Shown piece after piece: positions 1 through 14,096 of a stretch of 64,000 nt of DNA. The notes beneath the pieces were generated by a model. That model searched no databases and was not told where the DNA came from. It saw only the letters and a program-made list of their open reading frames with translations. The stretch comes from Mantamonas sphyraenae STR306 (taxonomy: Eukaryota; Protista; CRuMs). The stretch spans positions 62,001-126,000 of the forward strand of contig JAPMXV010000073.1 of assembly GCA_026936335.1 (NCBI GenBank), read 5' to 3'. The position numbers and the translations under genes were made by a program. Positions within the stretch are counted from its first letter, which is position 1. Each line of letters begins with the position of its first letter.

Positions 1-3000
1 AGCTGCTGGATGAAGCTAGGATCAAGCGGGAGGGAGCGCTGGGACGGCGGCAGATCGAGCTTTGGGAGACGTTTATTCTGGACTGCGAGACCAAGGCAGG
101 CATGGCGGTGGTGGAAGACAGGGGAGGTGAAGAGGAGGAGGAGGAGGCTGGTAAGTGAGAGGAGAGAAGAGGTTTGGGGGGGAAGGTTGGGGGAGGCGCT
201 GACACCTGCCCGCGTGCTTGAGCAGAAAGGGCGTCCAGCTCGTCATCGGCAGGGAGTGTCGTGGGCATCATGGACTATTCACGTGTGATGCAGATGAGTG
301 TGGTGCGTGGAGGGGATGTGTCGTCGGCAGGTTCGTCGAGTGGAGGAGGGGCGAAAGTGAAAGCGGGCGTTGTGAAGGAAGGGCAGATTGTGCCACACAA
401 GCAAAACACGCGGGACAGGTGTGGATGGGACAAGGGCGGGATGAGCGATGTGCGTGTGCTGCTGCTGGGTTCGGATGGACAGGCACGAGGAAAGGTCAAG
501 ATAAGCTGTGCAGAAGAGCAGAGGGCGGTGGAAGCAGCGCGACGAGTGGGCGGCTTGCTGACGAGTGCTGTGGGGGCGGCTGAACAGGTGGACTTTGTGG
601 CGGAGATTCGTTCATTGAAGGCACCGATGGTGCACATCATGACACACATGGGGGTGGCAGTGGTGGAGGGAGAGGATGCCTCTGTGACGAGAAAGACGCT
701 TGTGGACTCGCTGCGAGAAGCACGTCCCGTGGCAGTGTTTTTGAACGGATGCAGCAGTGCAGAGATGGCCATGGAGATCAATGACCATGTGCCACTGGTG
801 ATTGGGTACACCGATGCTGTGGACGATCATGCGGCTTTGGACATGGCCAAGGTGTGGTATGGGAACATTGGGAGTGGAGAGACTGTGCAAAAGGCGTTCC
901 GGGCTATGGTGGAAGCAGGAGGGGAGAAGGAAGGGCCGAAAGCACTGTTGTGTCTTTGGCAGGGCATGGAAGACACAGTGTTGGTCAACACGAGTGGAAA
1001 GAAGGCACAGGATGGATTTTCCAGGAGGCGTGTGGACAATCTGGGCAAAGCAAGAGAGCTTGTGCGACGAGAGGAGGTGCTGAAGGAGCTGCAGGAGGCA
1101 GAGGGAGTGGTGGTGGTGTGTGGTGCGCGGGGCATGGGCAAGACAAGCGTGGTGGAGATGCATGCGCAGGAGGTGAAGGAGAAGGGTGGCACGGATGTGG
1201 TGTGGTGGTGTGCGGGACAGAGCAGAGAGGCCTTGGTGAGTGACTTGCTGCAGTTGGGGGTGGTATTGGGCGTGTTCACGGATGCTGGAGTGCAGGCGGC
1301 TGAGAAGGAGGATGTGCGAGAGGGAATGGCAAAGAGGGTGATGCAGGCGTTGGATGGACAGCGGTGGATGTTGGTGATGGACGGGGTGGAGGCATGGGGG
1401 GATGTCAAGGCTTTTGTGCACGCAGGAGGTCGTGTGGTGATGACGACATGGCGGGATAGGATTTGGGACAAGCGGGTGGTGGACGCTGTGGTGAGGGTGG
1501 ATGTGATGCGGGATGATGAGGTGGATGCCGTGTTTGCGAGTGAGGGTGTGGTGGTGGATGGGGAGGAGGAGGAGGAGGCGTATGGGGAGCTGAAGAGGCT
1601 GCTGGATGGGATGGCATTGGCTGTGCGACAGGCAGCGGCAGTGATTGGAGAGTGGGGACAGGGTGGATCGGTGCAGAAGTACGTAAAGAGACTGGGACGC
1701 AGTCTGAGGCAGCTGGGAAAGAAAGTGGAGGGCGATGTGTACAGTGGAACAGCGTTGAGTGTGTGGCAGATTGCGATGGAAGAGGTATCGGGGAGGAACG
1801 AACATGCAGCAAGGTTGATAATGTGCATGGCGCTGTTGGATGGACAGGATCTGCCAAAGAGACTGCTGGTGACGCTGATGGAGCAGATTGCGGGTGTGCA
1901 GGACAAGGAAGAGGCGGAGGAAATGGCAGAGGAGGCATTGGAGGCACTGCAGAGAGTGTCGCTGGTGCAGCGGATGGTGGGGGAGGGAAGGAGTGGGTGG
2001 AAGGTGCATGGGCTGACGCAGATGATGGCAAGGGGAGGGCAAGTGGTGGTGATCGATGGAGAGGGAGGCATAGGGAGGCTGGTGGGTGTGAAGCAGGTGT
2101 TGAAGATGATGCGGAAGGAGTTTGCTTTCGATCCGAGCGAGTCGCTGGACGAACTTGCATGGCACAGGAGAATGCTGGTGCATGGTGAATCTGTGTGGAA
2201 GACATGTCACGAGGTGTTCGCACGCAGAAGGAATGTGGAGGACGTGTGCTGGGTGGGACGGAATGTGGCGCATGTGCATCACTGGATGGGCTCGTACGGA
2301 GAGGCGAGAAAGTGGATAGAGGAGGTGATAGGGGCGCAAAAGGAAGCTGGAGAAGAAGAGGAAGAGACCGAAGGATGGGCGAGAAGTCTGTTCCTGACTG
2401 CAGGGATTGCGATGGCAAAGGGAGAGTACGATCGGGCACTGGAGCTGCATGAGCAGGTACTGGAGATCGAGCGACGGGTACATGGTGGGGATGAGCACCC
2501 GAGTGTGGCCACAAGCATGCACAACATGGCTTTGGTGTACGATTCCAAGGGAGAGTACGATCGGGCACTGGAGCTGTATGAACAGGCACTGGGGATCACG
2601 CGACGGGTGCTTGGTGGGGATGAGCACCCGAGTGTGGCAGCGAGCATCAATAACATGGCTGCGGTGTACGATGCCAAGGGAGAGTACGATCAGGCACTGG
2701 AGCTGCATGAGCAGGCACTGGGAATCAGGCGACGGGTGCAAGGTGGGGATGAGCACCCGGATGTGGCATCGAGCATCAACAACATGGCTGGGGTGTACCA
2801 GGCCAAGGGAGAGTACGACCGGGCACTGGAGCTGTATGAACAGGCAATGGGGATCAAGCAACGGGTGCATGGTGGGGATGAGCACCCGGAAGTGGCCACG
2901 AGCATCCACAACATGGCTGTGGTGTACCAGGCCAAGGGAGAGTACGACCGGGCACTGGAGCTGCATGAGCAGGCACTGGGGATCAAGCGACGGGTGCATG

Positions 3001-3731
3001 GTGGCGATGAGCACCCGGATGTGGCCACGAGCATCCGCAACATGGCACAGGTGTACTTTGCCCTGGAAGAGTACGACACTGCTCTGCAACTGCTGCTTGT
3101 GGTTGAAGCCGTTCAAACTGCTCTTCTTCCTCGCAACCATCCATACCTCAGTGACACAAGATCAGCTCTCTTTGCCCTGAACCAGCGCAACACAGCGCGC
3201 ATGAGTGACGCTGAGGGCACCCTCCGATCCATCCGCTCAAAGAAGAGTGTTCGATTCACGCTCGCCAATCATGCCTTGTCCCTTGCCCAGCTAAGTGCAG
3301 ATGACCCCACCTCTGCGTTGGCCACTCACAGCCGAGTGGTTGCAGACATACAACGTCGCCAATCCTCCTCCTCCTCCTCGACATGCTCGCTGCCCAAGGT
3401 GGTCACTGACTTTGTTCAACGACTCGTTATCACCCATTCCTTCACCCTGCTCACATGTGACCTTCTCCCATTGTGGTTAGAGCACGTTTCGGTCGACCAA
3501 CTCCTATCGTGGACACCTGCCGTCCTCCCTGGGTCTCTGAACTCCCTCCTCCAACACGTCCCAGACACAATTGCCACTGTGGACGCCTCTGAAGCACTGA
3601 TTGACTCCCGTGCTCATCTGTATGCACCATCCCAACACAAGGAACTCATGCACACCCTGGCATCCAAGGCCATGCGAGCGGGTGACATTGAACGAGGCAA
3701 GCAGCTGGCTTCTCAATCCCAACGAATGTGA
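1..3731 (+). CDS. NLR-like protein copy 1 (5' partial): SAM-like exon, CHAT protease-like domain, NB-ARC, 5 x 43-aa TPR, C-terminal helical domain
   Basis: Exon 1 (..150) ends at GTAAGT (151). Branch GCTGAC ~198 and CAG acceptor 225 join it in frame to ORF 261..3731. CHAT-like motifs VHIMTHMG (~630-650) and VFLNGC (~735-752). P-loop GARGMGKT (1122-1145), Walker B WMLVMDG, sensor VVMTT, GLPL-like DGMALAV, MHD-like VHGLTQ. Five KGEYDRALEL...HP.VA.SI.NMA.VY repeats. Confidence 0.88.
2418..3062 (+). repeat. 5 x 129-bp TPR-coding tandem repeat
   Basis: Periodic AAGGGAGAGTACGA..GGCACTGGAGCTG...GATGAGCACCCG. Confidence 0.95.
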
Positions 3732-3799
3732 CGAGGTCAAGATCATGACAGTGAGGAGTGCTGATGCATGTTGCTTCAAATGCATCCTCTAATGGTCCT

Positions 3800-4560
3800 C
3801 GTCTTGAGCCGCCGATCTTCACTCTGGGCTGTCGTCGTCCCCGGTGCACTCCCGCAGGGCCAGTGGCCGAGTCCGCAGTCCCTGTATGGAAAGCAGTGCC
3901 ACACCAGATGCACTCTGGGCGTACGTGGCTGGTGGCGTAGGTTTGGGTGGTGGGCGGTGCGACACAGGGACACGATGGCGCTGAATGGGGTCCCGCATCT
4001 TCATCGCCAGCTGGCGATGCATTGCCAAATAAAACGGCCTTGTCGACCTTTTCCACACGAGGCATGGTGAGGACAGGCTTCCACTGGCTCTGCCGGCGGT
4101 GCTACGACGACGACGATGCCAGTCCCGGGTAAGGATCGGTGGGGTGGACACGAGGTGAGGAGAGGAATGCCAATGAAGAGAGAGCACACACATATACACA
4201 CATTCTGTCCCTCGTTGCCTCCTCTTGCAAATCGATCACCGTATGAGGGAAGGATGTGTGGAGGAGATCAGCCAGCTGCTGCTGAATGGGTCGCTGCAGT
4301 GTCCATTCTGGAGTGTGCTGCAGAGAGAGAGAGATGAAAGACACCAGCTTGCACTGCATCCACATCCCACCCCTCCCTTCCTCCCTCGCTCTCCATGCAG
4401 GCCAGTGCCACCCCACAGACGCACACACAGGGCCATCACCAGTCATTGCACGCGGTGCATGGCGGCATAGACGACAATGGTTTCTTGTCAACGTGCCGCC
4501 ACCGCATGTGTGCAATGACCGTCTCACATGGCCCTGATTCCCGTGCGTCTGTGTGATCAC
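3800..4560 (+). pseudogene. Possible decayed multi-RING-finger gene inside the duplicated unit (second copy ~9330-10080)
   Basis: Fragments HWLCRRC, HRMREGCVEEISQLLLNGSLQCPF and HCTRCM..CRHRMC, interspersed with GTAGGT/GTAAG donors and a TGCAG acceptor; stops and frameshifts in both copies. Confidence 0.35.
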
Positions 4561-4847
4561 TGGCCCAAACAGGAGGGAGTGGTGGGGTGGGGTGGGGGTA
4601 TGTGGGTGTGTGGAAGGTGGGGCGTGTTTCATCCCCAACCACCGCCCACTCCCTCCTATCTCATCGAGCATCCCCTGCCTGTACGTCTGACGTGAGTCCG
4701 GTTCGATTTGAAGCACCATCTGACCATCCTCAATGATTGGATCACCACGGGGTGCTTTTCTGCTGACGGCGCTGAACGGTTGGGTTTGTGTGCAGTGACA
4801 CGAAGGATGCCCCCGCTGACCCAAACAATCGACACACGCGGCTGCAC

Positions 4848-7800
4848 ATGAGCACAAAGGAAGACAGCGGTGCGCTGTGTCGGCGGTTGTTGGACTGTGA
4901 GGGCGAGGATGACCAGAGGAAGGCGTTGAAAGAGTGTGGGTTCCACAAGAAGGTCATCGATGCCTTGTTGGAAGAGAATGCGTACGGAGTGGCACTAGTG
5001 GAGCTGTTTCAGGAGGAGAGCGAGTGGGTGAAATTGCTGGATGAAGCTGGGATCGAGCGGGAAGTGCGAAGAGGACAGCGGCAGATCGAGCTTTGGGAGA
5101 CGTTTATTCTGGACTGCGAGACCAAGGCAGGCATGGCGGCGGTGGAAGACGGGGGAGATGAAGAGAAGGAGGAGGCTGGTAAGTGAGAGGAGAGAGGAGG
5201 TTTGGGGGGGGGGGAAGGTTGGAGGAGGCGCTGACACCTGCCCGCGTGCTTGAGCAGAAAGGGCGTCCAGCTCGTCATCGGCAGGGAGCATCGTGGGCAT
5301 CATGGACTATTCACGTGTGATGCAGATGAGTGTGGTGCGTGGAGGGGATGTGTCGTCGGCAGGTTCGTCGAGTGGAGGAGGGGCGAAAGGGAAAGGGGTC
5401 GTTGTGAAGGAAGGGCAGATTGTGCCACACAAGCGAAACACGCGGGAGAGGTGTGGATGGGACGAGGGCGGAATGAGCGATGTGCGTGTGCTGCTGCTGG
5501 GTTCGGATGGGCAGGCACGAGGAAAGGTCAAGATAAGCTGTGCAGAAGAGCAGAGGGCGTTGAAGGAATCTAACCGAGTGGGCGGCTTGACGACGATTGC
5601 CCTGCCCGCGGCTGAACAAGTGGATTTTGTCGCCCAGATAACGGCATTGAAAGCACCGATGGTACACATCGTCACACACATGGGGGTGGCTGTGGTGGAG
5701 GGAGAGGATGCCTCTGTGACGAGAAAGACGCTTGTGCACTCGCTGCGAGAAGCAAGTCCCGTGGCAGTGTTTTTGAACGGATGTTGGAGTGCAGAGATGG
5801 CCATGGAGATCAATGACCATGTGCCACTGGTGATTGGATACACCGAGGCAGTGGACGATCATGCGGCTGTGGACATGGCCAAGGCGTGGTATGGGAACAT
5901 TGGCCGTGGAGAGACAGTGCAAGAGGCATTCCGGGCTTTGGTGGAAGCAGGAGGGGAGAAAGAAGGGCCGAAAGCACTGCTGTGTCTTTGGCAAGGCATG
6001 GAAGACACAGTGTTGGTCAACAACACGAGTGGAAAGAAGGCACAGGAATGGTGCTCCAGGAGGCGTGTGGACAATCTGGGCAAAGCACGAGAGCTTGTGC
6101 GACGGGAGGAGGTGCTGAGGGAGCTGGAGGAGGCAGAAGGGGTGGTGGTGGTGTGTGGTGCGAGGGGCATGGGCAAGACAAGCGTGGTGGAGATGCATGC
6201 GCAGGAAGTGAAGGAGAAGGGTGGCACGGATGTGGTGTGGTGGTGTGCGGGACAGAGCAGAGAGGCTTTGGTGAGTGACTTGCTGCAGTTGGGGGTGGCA
6301 TTGGGCGTGTGGAGTGTGGAACAGGTGCAGTCGGCTGAGAAGGAGGATGTGCGAGAGGGAATGGCAAAGAGGGTGATGCAGGCGTTGGATGGACAGCGGT
6401 GGATGTTGGTGATGGACGGGGTGGAGGCATGGGCGGATGTCAAGGCGTTTGTGCACGGAGGAGGTCGTGTGGTGATGACGACATGGCGGGATAGGATATG
6501 GGACAAGCGGGTGGTGGACGCTGTGGTGAGGGTGGATGTAATGCGGGATGATGAGGTGGATGCTGTGTTTGCGAGTGAGGGTGTGGTGGTGGATGGGGAG
6601 GAGGAGGAGGAGGCGTATGGGGAGCTGAAGAGGCTGCTGGATGGGATGGCATTGGCTTTGCGACAGGCAGCGGCAGTGATTGGAGAGTGGGGAGAGGGTG
6701 GATCGGTGCAGAAGTACGTGAAGCGACTGGGACGCAGTCTGAGACAGCTGGGGAAGGAGGTGGAGAGCGATGTGTACAGTGGAACAACGCTGAGTGTGTG
6801 GCAGATTGCGATGGAAGAGGCATCGGGGAGGGACGAGCATGCAGCAAGGTTGATGTCGTGTTTGGCGCTGTTGGATGGACAAGATCTGCCAAAGAGGCTG
6901 CTGGTGACGCTGATGGAGCAGATTGAGGGTGTGGGGGACAGGGAAGAGGCGGAGGAAATGGCAGAGGAGGCATTGGAGGCACTGCAGAGAGTATCACTGG
7001 TGCAGAGGATGGTGGAAGGAGGGAGTGGGTGGAAGGTGCATGGTCTGACGCAGATGATGGCAAGGGGAGGGCAAGTGGTGGAGTTGGATGGAGAGGGAGG
7101 TGAAGAAAGGGTGGTGGGTGTGAAGCAGGTGTTGAAGATGATGCAGAAGGAATTTGCTTTCGATCCGAGCGAGTCGCTGGACGAACTTGCATGGCACAGG
7201 AGAATGCTGGTGCATGGTGAATCTGTGTGGAAGGCATGTCACGAGGGGTGCGCACGCACAAGGGATGTGGAGGACGTGTGCTGGGTGGGACAGAACGTGG
7301 CGGGTGTGCATGGTTGGATGGGGTCGTATGGAGCCGCGGAGGGAAGGATAGAAGAGGTGATGAGAGTGCAAAGGGAAGCTGGAGAAGAAGAGGAAGAGAC
7401 AGAAGGATGGGCAAGAAGTTTGTTCCTGGCTGCAGGGATTGCAGATGCGAAGGGAGAGTACGATCGGGCACTGGAGCTGTATGAGCAGGCACTGGGGATC
7501 AGGCGACGGGTGCATGGTGGGGATGAGCACCCGGATGTGGCCACGAGCATCAACAACATGGCTGGGGTGTACGATGCCAAGGGAGAGTACGATCGGGCAC
7601 TGGAGCTGCATGAGCAGGCACTGGGGATCAAGCGACGTGTGCATGGTGGGGATGAGCACCCGAGAGTGGCTACGAGCATCAACAACATGGCTTTGGTGTA
7701 CGATGCCAAGGGAGAGTACGATCGGGCACTGGAGCTGTATGAGCAGGCACTGGAGATCACACGACGGGTGCATGGTGGGGATGAGCACCCGAGAGTGGCT

Positions 7801-9305
7801 ACGAGCATCCACAACATGGCACAGGTGTACGATGCCAAGGGAGAGTACGATCGAGCACTGGAGCTGTATGAGCAGGCACTGGAGATCAGGCGACGGGTGC
7901 ATGGTGGGGATGAGCACCCGGATGTGGCATCCAGCATCAACAACATGGCTAGGGTGTACGATTCCAAGGGAGAGTACGATCGGGCACTGGAGCTGTATGA
8001 GCAGGCACTGTGGATCTGGCGACGGGTGCATGGTGGGGATGAGCACCCGAGTGTGGCATCGAGCATCAACAACATGGCTTTGGTGTACCAGGCCAAGGGA
8101 GAGTACGATCGGGCACTGGAGTTGTGTGAGCAGGCGCTGGCAATCGAGCGACGGGTGCATGGTGGGGATGAGCACCCAGATGTGGCCACGAGCATCAACA
8201 ACGTGGCTGGGGTGTACGATGCCAAGGGAGAGTACGATCGGGCACTGGAGCTGCATGAGCAGGCACTGGGGATCAGGCGACGGGTGCATGGTGGGGATGA
8301 GCACCCAGATGTGGCCACGAGCATCCACAACATGGCTGGGGTGTACCATGCCAAGGGAGAGTACGATCGGGCACTGGAGCTGCATGAGCAGGCACTGGAG
8401 ATCAGGCGACGGGTGCATGGTGGGGATGAGCACCCGAGTGTGGCATCGAGCATCAACAACATGGCTGGGGTGTACGATGCCAAGGGAGAGTACGATCGGG
8501 CACTGGAGCTGTATGAGCAGGCACTGGGAATCGCCCGACGGGTGCATGGTGGGGATGAGCACCCGCATGTGGCATCAAGCATCAAAAACATTGCGTTGGT
8601 GTACCATGCCATGGAAGGGTACGACACCGCTCTGCAACTGCTGCTTGTGGTTGAATCCCTGCAAACTGCTCTTCTTCCACGCAACCATCCAAACCTCAGC
8701 AACACAACATCAGCTGTCTTTGCCCTGAACCAGCTTAACACAGCGCGCATAAGTGACGCTGTGGGCAACCTCCGATCCATCCGCTCAAAGAAGAGTGTTC
8801 GATTCACGCTCGCCAATCATGCCTTGTCCCTAGCCCAGCTCAGTGCAGGTGACCCCAATTCTGCGTTGGCCACTCACAGCCGAGTGGTTGCGGACATACA
8901 ACGTCGCCAATCCTCCTCCTCGACATGCTCGCTGCCCAAGGTGGTCACTGATTTTGTTCAACGACTCGTAATCACCCATTCCTTCACCCTGCTCACATGT
9001 GACCTCCTCCCATTGTGGTCAGAGCACGTCTCGGTCGACCACCTCCTATCGTGGACACCAGCCGTCCTCCCCACGTCTCTGAACTCCCTCCTCCCACACG
9101 TCCCAGACACAATTGCCACTGTGGACGCCGCTGAAGCACTGATTGACTCCCGTGCTCATCTGTACGCACCATCCCAACACAAGGAACTCATGCACACCCT
9201 GGCATCAAGGCCATGCGAGCGGGGGACATTGAACGAGGCATGCAGCTGGCTTCTCAATCCCAACGAATGCGACGAGGTCAAGCAGATGACAGTGAGGAGT
9301 GCTGA
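4848..9305 (+). CDS. NLR-like protein copy 2: SAM-like–CHAT–NB-ARC–9 x TPR–C-terminal domain
   Basis: Exon 1 4848..5178 (LKECGFHKKVIDALLEENAYGVALVEL...LDEAGI, SAM-like), intron 5179..5257 (GTAAGT..GCTGAC..CAG), exon 2 in frame with ORF 5293. One C is missing at ~9206 relative to copy 1 (GCATCCAAGG vs GCATCAAGG); restoring it ends the protein ...RMRRGQADDSEEC* at 9305, so the listed end 9498 is likely an artefact. Confidence 0.88.
7450..8610 (+). repeat. 9 x 129-bp TPR-coding tandem repeat
   Basis: Same unit as copy 1, nine copies. Confidence 0.95.
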
Positions 9306-10816
9306 TGCACTCAAATTTATCCTCTCATTATCCTTGTGTCGAGCCGCTGATCTTCATCCTGGGCTGTCATCGTCCCCGTTGCACTCCCGCAGGGCCAGTG
9401 GCGGCCAGTCCGCAGTCCCTGTATGGAAAAGTAGTGCCACCTCAGATGCACTCTGGGCGTACGTGGCTGGTGGCGTAGGTTTGGGTGGTGGGTGGTGAGA
9501 CACAGGGACACGATTGCGCTGAATGGGGTCCCGCATCACCTATTGCCAAATAAAACGGCCTTGTCGACATTATCCACACGAGGCATGGTGTGGACAGGCT
9601 TCCACTGGCTCTGCCGGCGGTGCTACGACGACGACGACGCCAGTCCCGGGTAAGCATCTGTGAGGTGGACACGAGGAGAGGAGAGGAATACCAATGAAGA
9701 GAGAGCACAGACACACGTACACACATTCTGTCCCCCGTTGTGTCCTCTTGCAAATTCATCACCGTGTGAGGGAAGGATGTGTTGCAGAGATCAGCCAGCA
9801 GCTGCTGAATGGGTCGTTGCAGTGTCAATTCTGAAGTGTGCTGCAGAGAGAGTTGAAAGACACCAGCTTGCACTGCACCCACATCCCACCCCTCCCTCCC
9901 TCCCTCCCTATCCATGCAGGCCAGTGCCACCCCACAGACGCACACACAGGGCCATCACCAGTCATTGCACGCGGTGCATGGCGGCATAGACGACAATGTT
10001 CGCCTCTTCAACGTGTCGCCACCGCATGTGTGCAATGACCGCCTCACATGGCCCTGTTTTCCGTGCGTCTGTGTGATCACTGGCCCAAACAGGAGGTAGT
10101 GGTGGGGTGGGATGGGGGTGAGTGGGTGTGTGGAGGAGGGGCAGTGTTTCATCCCCAACCACCCTCACACCCACTTCTATCTCAGTCCCATCCCCTTCCA
10201 GTTCCTGTTCTCTCCACACTGTGTCGTGCATCCTTTCATCCCCAATCCCCCTCCCCCTCTCCTCCCGTTCCATTCCGTGCGTTTTTCCCAATCCGTTCCA
10301 TTCCTGACAAAATCCGTCGACCCCAGCCGCCCTGCACAGCCGTGTGTCCTCCCCCTGTTGCACCCTGCATTCAGAGACGATGTTCATCGAAATCCTACGT
10401 CGATTGCAGGTGTTGGAAGATGCCCCCTTTGTCGCCATGGACGATCCGCAGGTGGGAACCACGACGACGACGGCGACGACGGTGGAAATCGTCGACCCAA
10501 AAGTTGCTGCCGGAAACGTCGACCCCCCTTTTGTCCAAACCCCACCGTCCGTCGCCATCCCCTCCACCACCACCCCACACACCCATGTGTTCCCACTCTG
10601 GGGATGCCGTGTGTTGTTTTCCGACGCCGTCGAGTGAGCACCCATGGGACATGTTTTCTCCGTTTGTGCATGGCTTGTCTCTGCTGGCGCAGGCCTTGGC
10701 CAACCTCCCACCCAGCTTCCTCAACACCCGTCACAATCACCCACACATCATCGATCCACAACCAATCCAAATGGCAGAAGGGGCCCATCCCATGTGTACA
10801 TTCACCCCATGGCGCA

Positions 10817-13800
10817 TCAAATACCACCCCCACCGTCTGCCCACCCACCCACATGTCCCTGCACATGCCACCCTCGTCCACCACCACCACCACCACCACC
10901 ACGTCCTCTCCTCCTCCCCTTCCTCCTCTCCCACGCCCTCTGCCACCCCCACGCACACTCCCACCGCCACCACCAAAACCCTTGCCACGTGCACCACCAC
11001 CACCACCACCACTGGCACTCAACCGGCGTGCGAGATCCACCCACACGCCGTGCACAGGACCAAACTGCCGTGCATTGGCCAGGGCTTGCGCCTGCGACAA
11101 CACCGTCTTTGGCACATACCGTCGTTGCTTGCGGTCATACTGCAGCACAATGGCCACGTCCACACTCCAGGAGGCGCCTCCCTCCTTGTTGCGTCTGCTG
11201 TGTTTGCTCTGCAAACACACGGGCACCAGCCACTGCGGACGCAACGATTGCAACTCCACCGACTCGCACACCAGCCGCCCCTGCAGCGTGTTGTGCAATC
11301 CCATGGCCTCCTTCACCGCCCGTTCCAGCTTCATCCACTGTGTGTCCCCGTCGTCCAGCTCCTGGAACCGCACCGGAAACCGGCCCATCCGCTCCTCCAG
11401 AATGTGCCTCTGCGCCACACCGTCCGCCTCGAAAAACACAGCGGCACGCTTGTCAAACACCAGCTCTGCACGATGGAGTGGCTCACACGCGTCCTCGTCA
11501 CCCTCATTCGATGATGACCATGATGATGATGATGATGTCGATGTCGTCGTCTCCTCACCCCTCTCCTTCTCGTACTGTGTGTGCACATCCATCCACTCCA
11601 CCTCGTGTTTCAACGCCTCTTTGATGCCATCGATGTCACCGACGTCGTAGGCGCCGTCAAAGCCCATGTCATCCAACGCCTGCGGCGCATCGCGTTCCAT
11701 CTCCCGCTGGCTGCTCACACCCACCGCAAACACGTCCACCCCCGACCTCTGCGTGCGACGCATCACAAACGACACATACGTCATGTTCAGTTGATCCACA
11801 GAGTCCTGGCCACCATTGTCATTGTTGTTGGTGGTGGTGGTGCACACCAGACCCGTGTTCAACACCACCCCATTGGCCAGTGCCACACAGCCCTGCTTGC
11901 ACCTCAACGACAGCATCAGCCTGGCACGCAGGTAATCACTGATCAGCACACGTTGTTGCTGCCCACCATCATCACCCTGCCCATGCCAACCATCGTCATC
12001 CTCAACATCATCATCATCATCGTCCACATACCCAAACACATCCACATCGCCACGTCTCCTCCTGAACGCACGTGCAATCACCTCGTCCAGCACGCCGTCG
12101 TCCAGTGCCGCCGCAGGCAGCAGCTGCCTCGTCAGATCCTTCCTGCGCACAAACTCCTCCCATCCCATCTCCTCCCTGCCCAGTCCCTCCACATACGCCT
12201 GCAATGCCCCATGTGGCACCAATGCCTCTCTGCCCCACTTGTATGCCAGTGCCTCCAGCCACCTCACAGGGATCCTTGGCAGCGAGCTCAGTCCCACTCT
12301 CTGCTGCCTTCCTCCTCCTCCTCCACGGCCCGTGTCACACAACTCGCCCAGGGTGGCCAGCCAGTTGCAAAAGAAGGACTGCGAGGTGGTACCCTTGCGA
12401 TCGTTGGTGGTGGCCACCAGACACCAGATGCGTGCCAGCCCATGCTGGTCCTGCTCGGCATAAAAGGGCACCACCAGCAATCGATCACGCCCCAACTGCA
12501 GCGTCCACGTGTACTCACGACACAGAAATATAAACACCTCCCGATCCGAACCCAGCCTGGATGACATCGCCACCTCCTCCTGCACCCGACGTGCAATCGC
12601 AGACGGCACAAACATGTGGTCCAGCAGACTGCTGCTGTGGTGGTGGTTGTTGCTTCTGCTGCTTCTTCTTCTGTTCCTGCTGCTGCTGGGTGCCCCTGTG
12701 CCCGTGAATGCCTTGTACCGAATCATCCATGCTTCGTCGTCGTCGTCGTCGTCGTCGTCGCCCTCACCACCACCCACATCATCCTCATCATCAACAACAC
12801 CATACCCATCCTCATCATGGTACGTGTCCTGCTGCTGCTGCTGCCGCTGCTGCTGTGGAGAATGATACGTAGGATGACGGGAATGACGATGGTCATGGGG
12901 ATGGTATGGACGAGGGTCATGGTTGCCTGTGTGCCAGCGTGTCCCACCAGCACCCCCTCCCCCACCATCCCCACCACCCTCATCATACACCCTCATCCCA
13001 TGTGTGTGCTGCTGCTGCTTGCTATTGCTACTTCCATAGTCCCCTTCCTCCCCTGTGCTCGGTCCGAAATCCTCCTCCAGCCTCTGCTGCAGCCGTTGGA
13101 CCACGTCGTCGATGCTGGCCACCGCCTCGGCCGGCCATTCCACACCGCCGCCACCACCACCGCCTCCACTGCCACCACCACCCGCATCCGTCGTCATCAT
13201 CGTCATCGTCGTCGTCACCACGTCTGCCACCTCGTCCAATCGACACAGATGCGTGGCACGGAAGTGCTGACTGTGATGGTTGGCTTCGTTGCGTTCGGCC
13301 AGCAGACACCAGGCGTGGCCTGTGAGAGCGTCCCTGTGCACCACCACCACAAGCGCCTCCCTGCTCTCGTGCCTGGCTGCCCACGTGTAATCCTCACACA
13401 GACGGGCCAACACACGCTTAAAGTGGGCCGTGGGATAGTCTGGCACCCGCGTGGGAATCTCCCCCACCAGTTTGGGCGGCACAAAGCACGCATCCAACAG
13501 CGTCGTCCGACTGCGTCGCTGGTGCAGTCCACCGTCAAACATTTTGTACCCCACATGCCATCCATTCGATGACGACGACGATGACGATGATGATTGTGAC
13601 CATACTGGCTGTGTCAATGATGATGATGGTGAGGAGGAGGAGGCGGAGGAGGAGGACAACGAGGACGCCAATGCCCATCGCTCACCTCCGCCTCCTCCTC
13701 CCTGCTGCCCCTTTGCCTCCCAACCACCACCACCACCACCACCACCACCACTGCCACCGTAACTGCTGCTGTTGCCCACCTGCATGTGTTTCCTCCTGGC

Positions 13801-13833
13801 TGGTGGCACGTATGCCTTTGCTGCTGCTGTGAG

Positions 13834-13868
<35 letters not shown>

Positions 13869-13926
13869 TGCCACCACCACCATCCCCACCACCACCACCA
13901 CGGCGTGGCTGGCCTTGGCTCCTCAT
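10817..13926 (-). CDS. DUF3825-like protein with N-terminal PAM2-like motif, duplicated ~110-aa domain and C-terminal RGG tail
   Basis: Within ORF 10384..13983; likely start MRSQGQPRR (13926). DUF3825-like motifs DYLRARL, LNTGL, HILEERMGRFP, QWLVPVCL, DVAIVL, KTVLSQAQALANARQFGP...W (~11950-11040). The tail probably shifts frame in GGT repeats and ends at TGA 10817. Confidence 0.65.
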
Positions 13927-14096
13927 CTCTCTCTCTCTTTCTTTCTCTTGTTTTTGCCTGCGCCATGGCACACCACCATACAACTCCCATCACCACCAGG
14001 CCATTTTGCGTCCTTTAGTGGTGGTGCGAGTCCCCATTCCCCCCCGTTCCCCCGTCCCCGCTTTTGTCCCGTCTTCTGTGTTGGTACACGCAGACA

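Follow-up and report, generated by a model that had tools for sequence, protein, structure and literature searches.

What kind of protein is encoded by two adjacent, closely similar genes of Mantamonas sphyraenae STR306, and how might such proteins act? M. sphyraenae is a marine CRuMs flagellate, most of whose genes are single-exon. Its genome assembly comprises 25.06 Mb in 78 contigs with a GC content of 59% (PMC10492846). We studied a 64,000-nucleotide stretch of contig JAPMXV010000073.1 (positions 62,001 to 126,000; G000:C73:62001-126000 in our numbering), here called the window, and all genome-wide counts given below cover the 78 contigs of the assembly (25,061,354 bases). The two genes, copy 1 and copy 2, lie head-to-tail at the start of the window, are 91% identical across 3.1 kb, and contain long open frames at 222-3728 and 5254-9495, respectively. 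An earlier reading of the sequence (the original prediction) proposed that each encodes a spliced protein with a SAM-like domain followed by CHAT, NB-ARC and TPR modules, an architecture that Pfam and profile matches, a structural model and intron phase all support. We consider it reasonably likely that the pair are members of an expanded family of NLR-type immune receptors in which oligomerization activates the receptor's own protease.

The domain order depends on whether the short upstream reading frame at 4848-5186 belongs to the same gene as the long frame of copy 2. The original prediction treated it as exon 1, joined to exon 2 in both copies by an in-frame GT-AG intron. The first exons of the two copies (that of copy 1 lying at G000:C73:61817-62146) are 82% identical, and the introns of the five close copies in the genome, with lengths of 75, 79, 78, 78 and 79 nt, are all in frame and in phase 1. 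A more distant paralog at C68:246k, which is only 36% identical in exon 1 and 25% identical in the CHAT/NB-ARC region, has its own in-frame phase-1 intron of 71 nt with the same two domains on either side. Intron phase is thus constant at six loci and over four different lengths, which supports the predicted exon. The bare intron signature is not found above chance (5 occurrences in the window against 2.7 in shuffled sequence), and since the signature alone is not rare, the weight of the argument falls on the conservation of phase and on the distant paralog. We are highly confident in the predicted splicing of exon 1 to exon 2 to give one two-exon gene.

The domain encoded by exon 1 has no sequence match in Pfam or the PDB and no outside homolog in a word-index search among proteins of 55-175 aa; comparison with the Atlas gives weak SAM clusters (0.83-0.84). 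Its single-sequence fold is poor (predicted local distance difference test score, pLDDT, of 56), and an AlphaFold2 model built from an 8-row paralog alignment is helical with a pLDDT of 80.6. When this model was compared to known structures with VIA-align, SAM domains filled almost all of the top 29 rows, the best being the SAM domain of ASK3 (Z 7.3, root-mean-square deviation 2.8, 70 residues aligned), followed by those of Scm/Sfmbt, Hyphen and SARM1. Because the VIA matches are so uniformly SAM, more than because of the Z value, the model supports a divergent SAM fold; the SAM-like domain originally proposed therefore has structural backing and none from sequence. Copies of the domain occur at eight loci in the genome, six of them before CHAT-NB-ARC and the other two joined to TPRs (C17) and to ankyrins (C6), respectively. 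Its presence in single open frames with these other partners argues that it is a real coding module. The C17 protein (L029:1-1857, minus strand, G000:C17:38.5k) carries the SAM-fold domain and TPRs in one frame, without NB-ARC or CHAT, and is a candidate adaptor, sensor or decoy. At C6 (L049:1682-7563, G000:C6:375k-381k) an LRR/GTPase/CHAT frame comes after a SAM-fold and ankyrin frame; the two are bridged by no intron of the pattern used here, which implies either a frameshift or two genes.

Two segments of the SAM-fold domain, both chosen by us, differ in charge: in each of the eight copies the presumed mid-loop segment has an acidic net charge (-3 to -8), and that of the end-helix segment runs from neutral to basic (0 to +4). 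This predicted asymmetry fits the pattern of head-to-tail SAM contacts and is compatible with polymer formation. That a SAM homopolymer is required for activation is, in our view, doubtful.

The CHAT domain of a window copy reaches an E-value of 0.0016 against Pfam, which is under the cut-off, and some paralogs score above it. A profile of 15 paralogous CHAT domains matches the SAVED-CHAT structure PDB 8tl0 with an E-value of 2.4e-18, and hhalign gives 99.3% to a bacterial CHAT. In the profile alignment to 8tl0 the family His falls on the His of HFIGHG and the family Cys on that of LNAC, and both residues are invariant in the 15 aligned paralogs, where identity descends to 22%. The prediction that the domain keeps both putative catalytic residues thus holds. 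In SAVED-CHAT, H375 and C422 form the catalytic dyad and oligomerization activates the enzyme (10.1101/2023.06.23.546230). The ratio of nonsynonymous to synonymous differences (pN/pS) in CHAT is 0.38-0.47 between copies. Judged from these sequence features, the CHAT domain is probably an active protease.

The central NB-ARC domain is recognized above the Pfam cut-off in both copies (30.2 bits in copy 1 and 28.4 bits in copy 2) and is followed by TPR_10/TPR_12 matches with Pfam E-values of about 1e-110, giving the order effector, NB-ARC, repeats. The NB-ARC-TPR portion of copy 2 also scores 365 bits against the NCBIfam model NF040586 FxSxx_TPR (cut-off 300), a score driven by the TPRs. Walker A (GxxGxGKT), Walker B (hhhhD) and the winged-helix HxL motif are kept in 12 of 12 aligned paralogs. 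The sensor-1 basic residue is displaced by one Trp, at a position that varies in bacterial relatives too. The distant SAM-CHAT-NB-ARC paralog (L027:2004-3269) has Asn for the Walker B Asp. In another paralog (L041:2048-6625), CHAT and NB-ARC are separated by an inserted hydrophobic stretch that resembles a transmembrane segment.

The TPR units of the family have a mean nucleotide identity of 90% and number from 5 to more than 40 per gene. Most codons are the same in all of the 111 distinct units compared; those that vary are codons 10, 15, 17, 28, 31, 34, 38, 41 and 42. By a parsimony count, three of these (17, 38 and 41) have a ratio of nonsynonymous to synonymous substitution (dN/dS) of about 5, with site p values of 0.013, 0.002 and 0.008, respectively. 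Units from different clades are about 90% identical, far above the roughly 55% identity of the same clades in CHAT/NB-ARC, which indicates exchange of repeats between genes. The same repeat regime is known from fungal NLRs, in which the variable sites lie on the concave TPR face (PMC4986451). The hypervariable codons and the variation in repeat number uphold the TPR sensor of the original prediction, and we think it likely that the array senses non-self. The C-terminal tail of about 186 aa has TPR proteins as its Atlas neighbours, with recognition under threshold, and is probably a degenerate TPR-like solenoid. The tail (window 3171-3731 and 8700-9205) is C-rich and sharply unlike the remainder of the gene in composition, which suggests a graft. 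The 1-nt deletion near 9206 in copy 2 is not found in copy 1, C76 or C77 and alters the last ~95 residues; the other four close copies end about 15-30 codons beyond the matching position. Either a genuine allele or an error in the assembly could account for it.

The pair is part of a large family. About 30 CHAT loci are recovered when the genome is searched with the CHAT profile and with Pfam. Of the 19 NB-ARC frames found, 16 have a CHAT immediately before them, and these 16 frames together with C77 and C2 make at least 18 CHAT-NB-ARC genes (the paralogs C5, C13, C49, C73:155k, C21 and C51:534k being known from match coordinates). Only six of the 18 or so have a SAM match and about 12 have none; for the eight genes of a second CHAT-NB-ARC clade there is no SAM match in the flanks examined. 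One frame of 2387 codons (G000:C5:276k-281k, minus strand) has CHAT followed by two NB-ARC matches. About seven further genes combine LRRs and a Roc-like GTPase, itself under the Pfam cut-off, with a C-terminal CHAT. They lie at G000:C68:203k-235k (L043-L045, L047), C68:142k (L038), C3:340k (L048) and C6:380k (L049); four are in tandem on C68 and retain the canonical His-Gly. Among the effectors attached to NB-ARC in Mantamonas, CHAT seems to predominate, and it also caps Roc-like receptors. On C67, ankyrin-like genes (L036:784-2055; L041:2312-3640 and 7784-9055; L042:7139-8032) stand head-to-head, as judged by eye, with several SAM-less CHAT-NB-ARC-TPR genes, and are possible sensor or helper partners, or substrates.

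From STAND and CHAT biology we infer the following scheme. At rest the TPRs would keep the NB-ARC domain closed. Once a protein, foreign or altered, had bound the variable side of the TPRs, nucleotide exchange would allow NB-ARC to oligomerize, and the resulting clustering of CHAT domains would order their active sites, as filament formation does in SAVED-CHAT. CHAT would then cut a substrate whose cleavage stops the growth of the infected cell or kills it. Being optional (6 of about 18 genes), the SAM domain would most likely add avidity or dock SAM-bearing partners. Because about 12 of 18 paralogs are without a SAM match, SAM cannot be an indispensable component of the self-contained inflammasome that the original prediction envisaged. 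Canonical gasdermins and metacaspases are apparently not the substrate.

Several results weigh against this reading. For exon 1, Foldseek with the same model gave no significant match and did not recover SAM, and a Z of 7.3 lies inside the range reached by common folds. In CHAT, the catalytic His is followed by Met in the NB-ARC clades and by Gly in the Roc-like cluster on C68, and among the 150 best outside matches the residue at this position is Gly in 125, Ala in 14, Ser in 8, Thr in 2 and Met in none; the Met makes activity less certain and leaves homology unaffected. The Pro of the NB-ARC GxP motif is Ala in 12 of 12 aligned paralogs, and the nearest bacterial relatives retain Pro. The TPR site tests lose significance once corrected for 43 codons, and their dN/dS values are inflated by recombination. 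Several family copies contain frameshifts. Finally, the genome has no match to models for gasdermin (PF04598), Peptidase_C14, MLKL_N or HeLo, all of which are weak negatives; the PF04598 model may miss divergent microbial gasdermins. The lack of a metacaspase (Peptidase_C14) match at E 0.001 would, if it holds, be unusual for a non-animal eukaryote. The immediate neighbours of the pair are LRR and DUF3825 genes.

Some of these points would suit a receptor of the same build in which CHAT is a pseudo-protease or scaffold and the signal passes through SAM-mediated recruitment of partners, not cleavage: His-Met replaces a His-Gly motif in a form seen in none of the 150 outside matches, the Pfam CHAT score is under the cut-off, and no known substrate family was found. 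Such a receptor is difficult to reconcile with the invariance of His and Cys at 22-25% paralog identity, in His-Met and His-Gly versions alike, or with the predominance of paralogs lacking SAM, in which CHAT is left as the sole effector candidate, and we regard it as improbable. The exon joining could likewise be doubted. Exon 1 might be a separate small SAM gene ending at the stop at 5184-5186, with the NLR beginning separately at the ATG at 5302, in which case the two would be neighbours or alternative forms; the in-frame ATG does exist within exon 2, and so do paralogs without SAM. This is very improbable given that donor, branch point and acceptor are phase-constant over six loci with varied intron lengths, the distant paralog included, and that the C2 copy has no stop at the position matching 5184-5186.

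A more general objection is that the receptors, even if built as we propose, might serve non-immune signalling, for example protease-controlled stress responses, encystment or self/kin recognition. Mantamonas is unicellular, so that death-based immunity requires kin benefit, and none of our results provides a pathogen link. Opposed to this are the marks of a conflict system, namely repeat homogenization, hypervariable codons, copy-number variation, frameshifts and clustering with LRR and ankyrin genes; kin recognition, moreover, would still be non-self sensing. We attach a low probability to this explanation. Bacterial contamination, or a set of decaying, non-functional repeats, would account for the mostly bacterial character of the nearest NB-ARC and CHAT relatives and for the frameshifts in several copies. 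The genes lie on many nuclear contigs alongside eukaryotic genes (THOC1, USP and a TRP channel), have spliceosomal-type introns and host GC content, are under purifying selection, and have no outside NB-ARC relative more than 33% identical. We rejected contamination on this eukaryotic gene context and consider either form of the explanation extremely improbable. Extending the immune-receptor reading to the whole genome leads to a speculative picture to which we give limited credence: a protease-centred innate immune network with CHAT as the chief output of both the NB-ARC-TPR and the LRR/Roc-like receptors, with SAM playing the part of the death-fold domains of animal inflammasomes by linking the SAM-CHAT-NLRs, the SAM-TPR sensor and the SAM-ankyrin protein, and with an executioner that is neither gasdermin nor metacaspase and would thus be a new death or arrest effector.

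Coordinates of the features of the two genes within the window (exon 1 of copy 1 begins upstream of it).
Feature	Positions	Strand	Basis or detail
Copy 1 exon 1, 3' part (SAM-fold domain)	1..150	+	Starts 184 nt before the window
Copy 1 intron, 75 nt, phase 1, GT-AG	151..225	+	GTAAGT donor, CTGAC at -27, in frame
Copy 1 exon 2: linker, CHAT, NB-ARC, TPR array, C-terminal helical tail	226..3731	+	1169-codon open frame; Pfam
Copy 1 CHAT caspase-like domain	441..957	+	His codon 645, Cys codon 750
Copy 1 NB-ARC/STAND	1060..2030	+	Walker A 1122, Walker B 1371, altered GxP 1608, winged-helix His motif 2004
Copy 1 TPR array, 129-nt (43-aa) unit, 4.9 copies	2414..3046	+	Tandem Repeats Finder (TRF), 89% matches
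Copy 1 C-terminal tail, ~186 aa	3171..3731	+	Matches in five close SAM-bearing copies only
Copy 2 exon 1, ~100-aa SAM-fold domain	4848..5178	+	8 genome loci; AlphaFold2; VIA
Copy 2 intron, 79 nt, phase 1, GT-AG	5179..5257	+	GTAAGT donor at 5179, CTGAC 27 nt before end, CAG 5255-5257
Copy 2 exon 2: linker, CHAT, NB-ARC, TPR array, tail	5258..9498	+	1414-codon open frame
Copy 2 CHAT caspase-like domain	5473..5988	+	His codon 5677, Cys codon 5782; phmmer to 8tl0 E 1.7e-5
Copy 2 NB-ARC/STAND	6090..7062	+	Walker A 6157, Walker B 6406, altered GxP 6643, winged-helix His motif 7036
Copy 2 TPR array, 129-nt (43-aa) unit, 9.2 copies	7444..8624	+	TRF, 90% matches
Copy 2 C-terminal tail	8700..9498	+	1-nt deletion near 9206 shifts end to other frame

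The pair is flanked by LRR genes upstream and a DUF3825 gene downstream, with no third copy adjoining. Thus the genes are in tandem, as first described, and the term array does not apply; we rejected a longer tandem array on the identity of these flanking genes and the presence of only two copies. The DUF3825 gene (window 10384-13983, minus strand; Pfam E 5e-7) is convergent with the pair and lies immediately downstream of it. L030 and L031, 2-20 kb before the window, contain tandem LRR_6 genes with small Cys/His-rich ORFs between them. Similar Cys/His-rich ORFs also precede the C76 and C77 copies, which suggests a larger duplicated immune block.

Relatives outside the genome are distant. A word-index search found no full-length outside relative of CHAT plus NB-ARC, only distant bacterial-type NB-ARC-TPR proteins, and the identity of outside NB-ARC relatives does not exceed 33%. 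There is no relative in viral contigs, and PADLOC returned nothing meaningful. The best outside CHAT matches are likewise distant, with four proteins at E <1e-30, scores that are boosted by multiple domains. Bacterial CHAT-nSTAND1-WD40 and CHAT-NACHT-HEAT proteins are among the matches, and the labelled ones are mostly bacterial; one, among the top matches, is from the choanoflagellate Salpingoeca kvevrii. In a CHAT tree made in quick mode and without fungal CHATs, which cannot name a donor, the CHATs of Mantamonas form one long-branched group (Shimodaira-Hasegawa-like approximate likelihood ratio support of 90, with two long outside rows included) and have no supported sister. Bacterial ancestry of the CHAT domain is plausible from these comparisons. 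They lend no support to the horizontal origin with later intron gain suggested in the original prediction, which the tree neither favours nor rejects.

Protease-effector receptors of related design are known elsewhere. Fungal NLRs with an N-terminal CHAT have been described, dozens of them near gasdermin genes (PMC10197012, PMC9815663, PMC12881547). These and the HET-Q2-like proteins (Clave et al., 10.1101/2021.06.03.446900; PMC10197012; PMC9815663) resemble the Mantamonas proteins in joining an N-terminal protease effector to a NOD and repeats, and have been termed contracted pyroptosis-like pathways in the same studies. The original prediction cited HET-Q2 itself as a CHAT effector, which is incorrect: HET-Q2 is an S8 serine protease, and CHAT occurs in only some HET-Q2-like proteins (10.1101/2021.06.03.446900). 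The fungal CHAT NLRs differ in having been studied beside gasdermin genes, of which none was found in Mantamonas, and in fungal NLRs SAM (SAM_Ste50p) and CHAT are listed as separate N-termini, whereas here they occur together. In their repeats, the Mantamonas genes resemble fungal NB-ARC-TPR NLRs of high internal conservation (PMC4986451, PMC13449251) and brown algal NB-ARC-TPR proteins (cited in PMC11378527), with near-identical TPRs, variation in repeat number, few hypervariable sites and pseudogenized copies. They differ in that the 43-aa unit lies within one exon, without the brown-algal exon shuffling. The Mantamonas genes are distinguished from both the fungal and the algal groups by their CHAT effector and their unicellular CRuMs host.

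The closest solved relative of the protease is SAVED-CHAT of the Haliangium type III-B CRISPR system (PDB 8tl0; 10.1101/2023.06.23.546230), which shares the His-Cys dyad. It differs in having a SAVED sensor of cA3 and a PCaspase substrate, and in lacking STAND, TPR and SAM; no PCaspase-like Peptidase_C14 match is present in the Mantamonas genome. Bacterial NB-ARC-TPR proteins (NF040586 FxSxx_TPR) are akin in their body, which scores above the cut-off, and differ in identity (26-33%), in the FxSxx operon that Mantamonas lacks, and in the absence of the intron and SAM that Mantamonas has. SARM1 offers an analogy only: it too has a SAM fold (VIA Z 6.3-6.4) beside an enzyme that plausibly needs clustering, but its architecture is ARM-SAM-SAM-TIR, its enzyme an NADase, and it has no STAND domain. 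The literature searched, whose coverage is incomplete, describes no protein that combines SAM, CHAT, NB-ARC and TPR, and no NLRs from Mantamonas. The novelty first suggested must therefore be given up for the CHAT-NB-repeat core, which is known in fungi and bacteria, and kept for the remainder: the SAM fusion and the CRuMs lineage look new.

With these genes, the range of protease-effector NLRs, hitherto described in fungi and bacteria, would come to include a unicellular lineage that diverges near the root of Amorphea and whose NLRs share a repeat-diversification regime with those of fungi. Because neither gasdermin nor metacaspase was detected, the CHAT substrate could be a new executioner. 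The SAM fusion, in turn, provides a test case for asking if a caspase-like enzyme can be clustered by SAM in place of death-fold domains.

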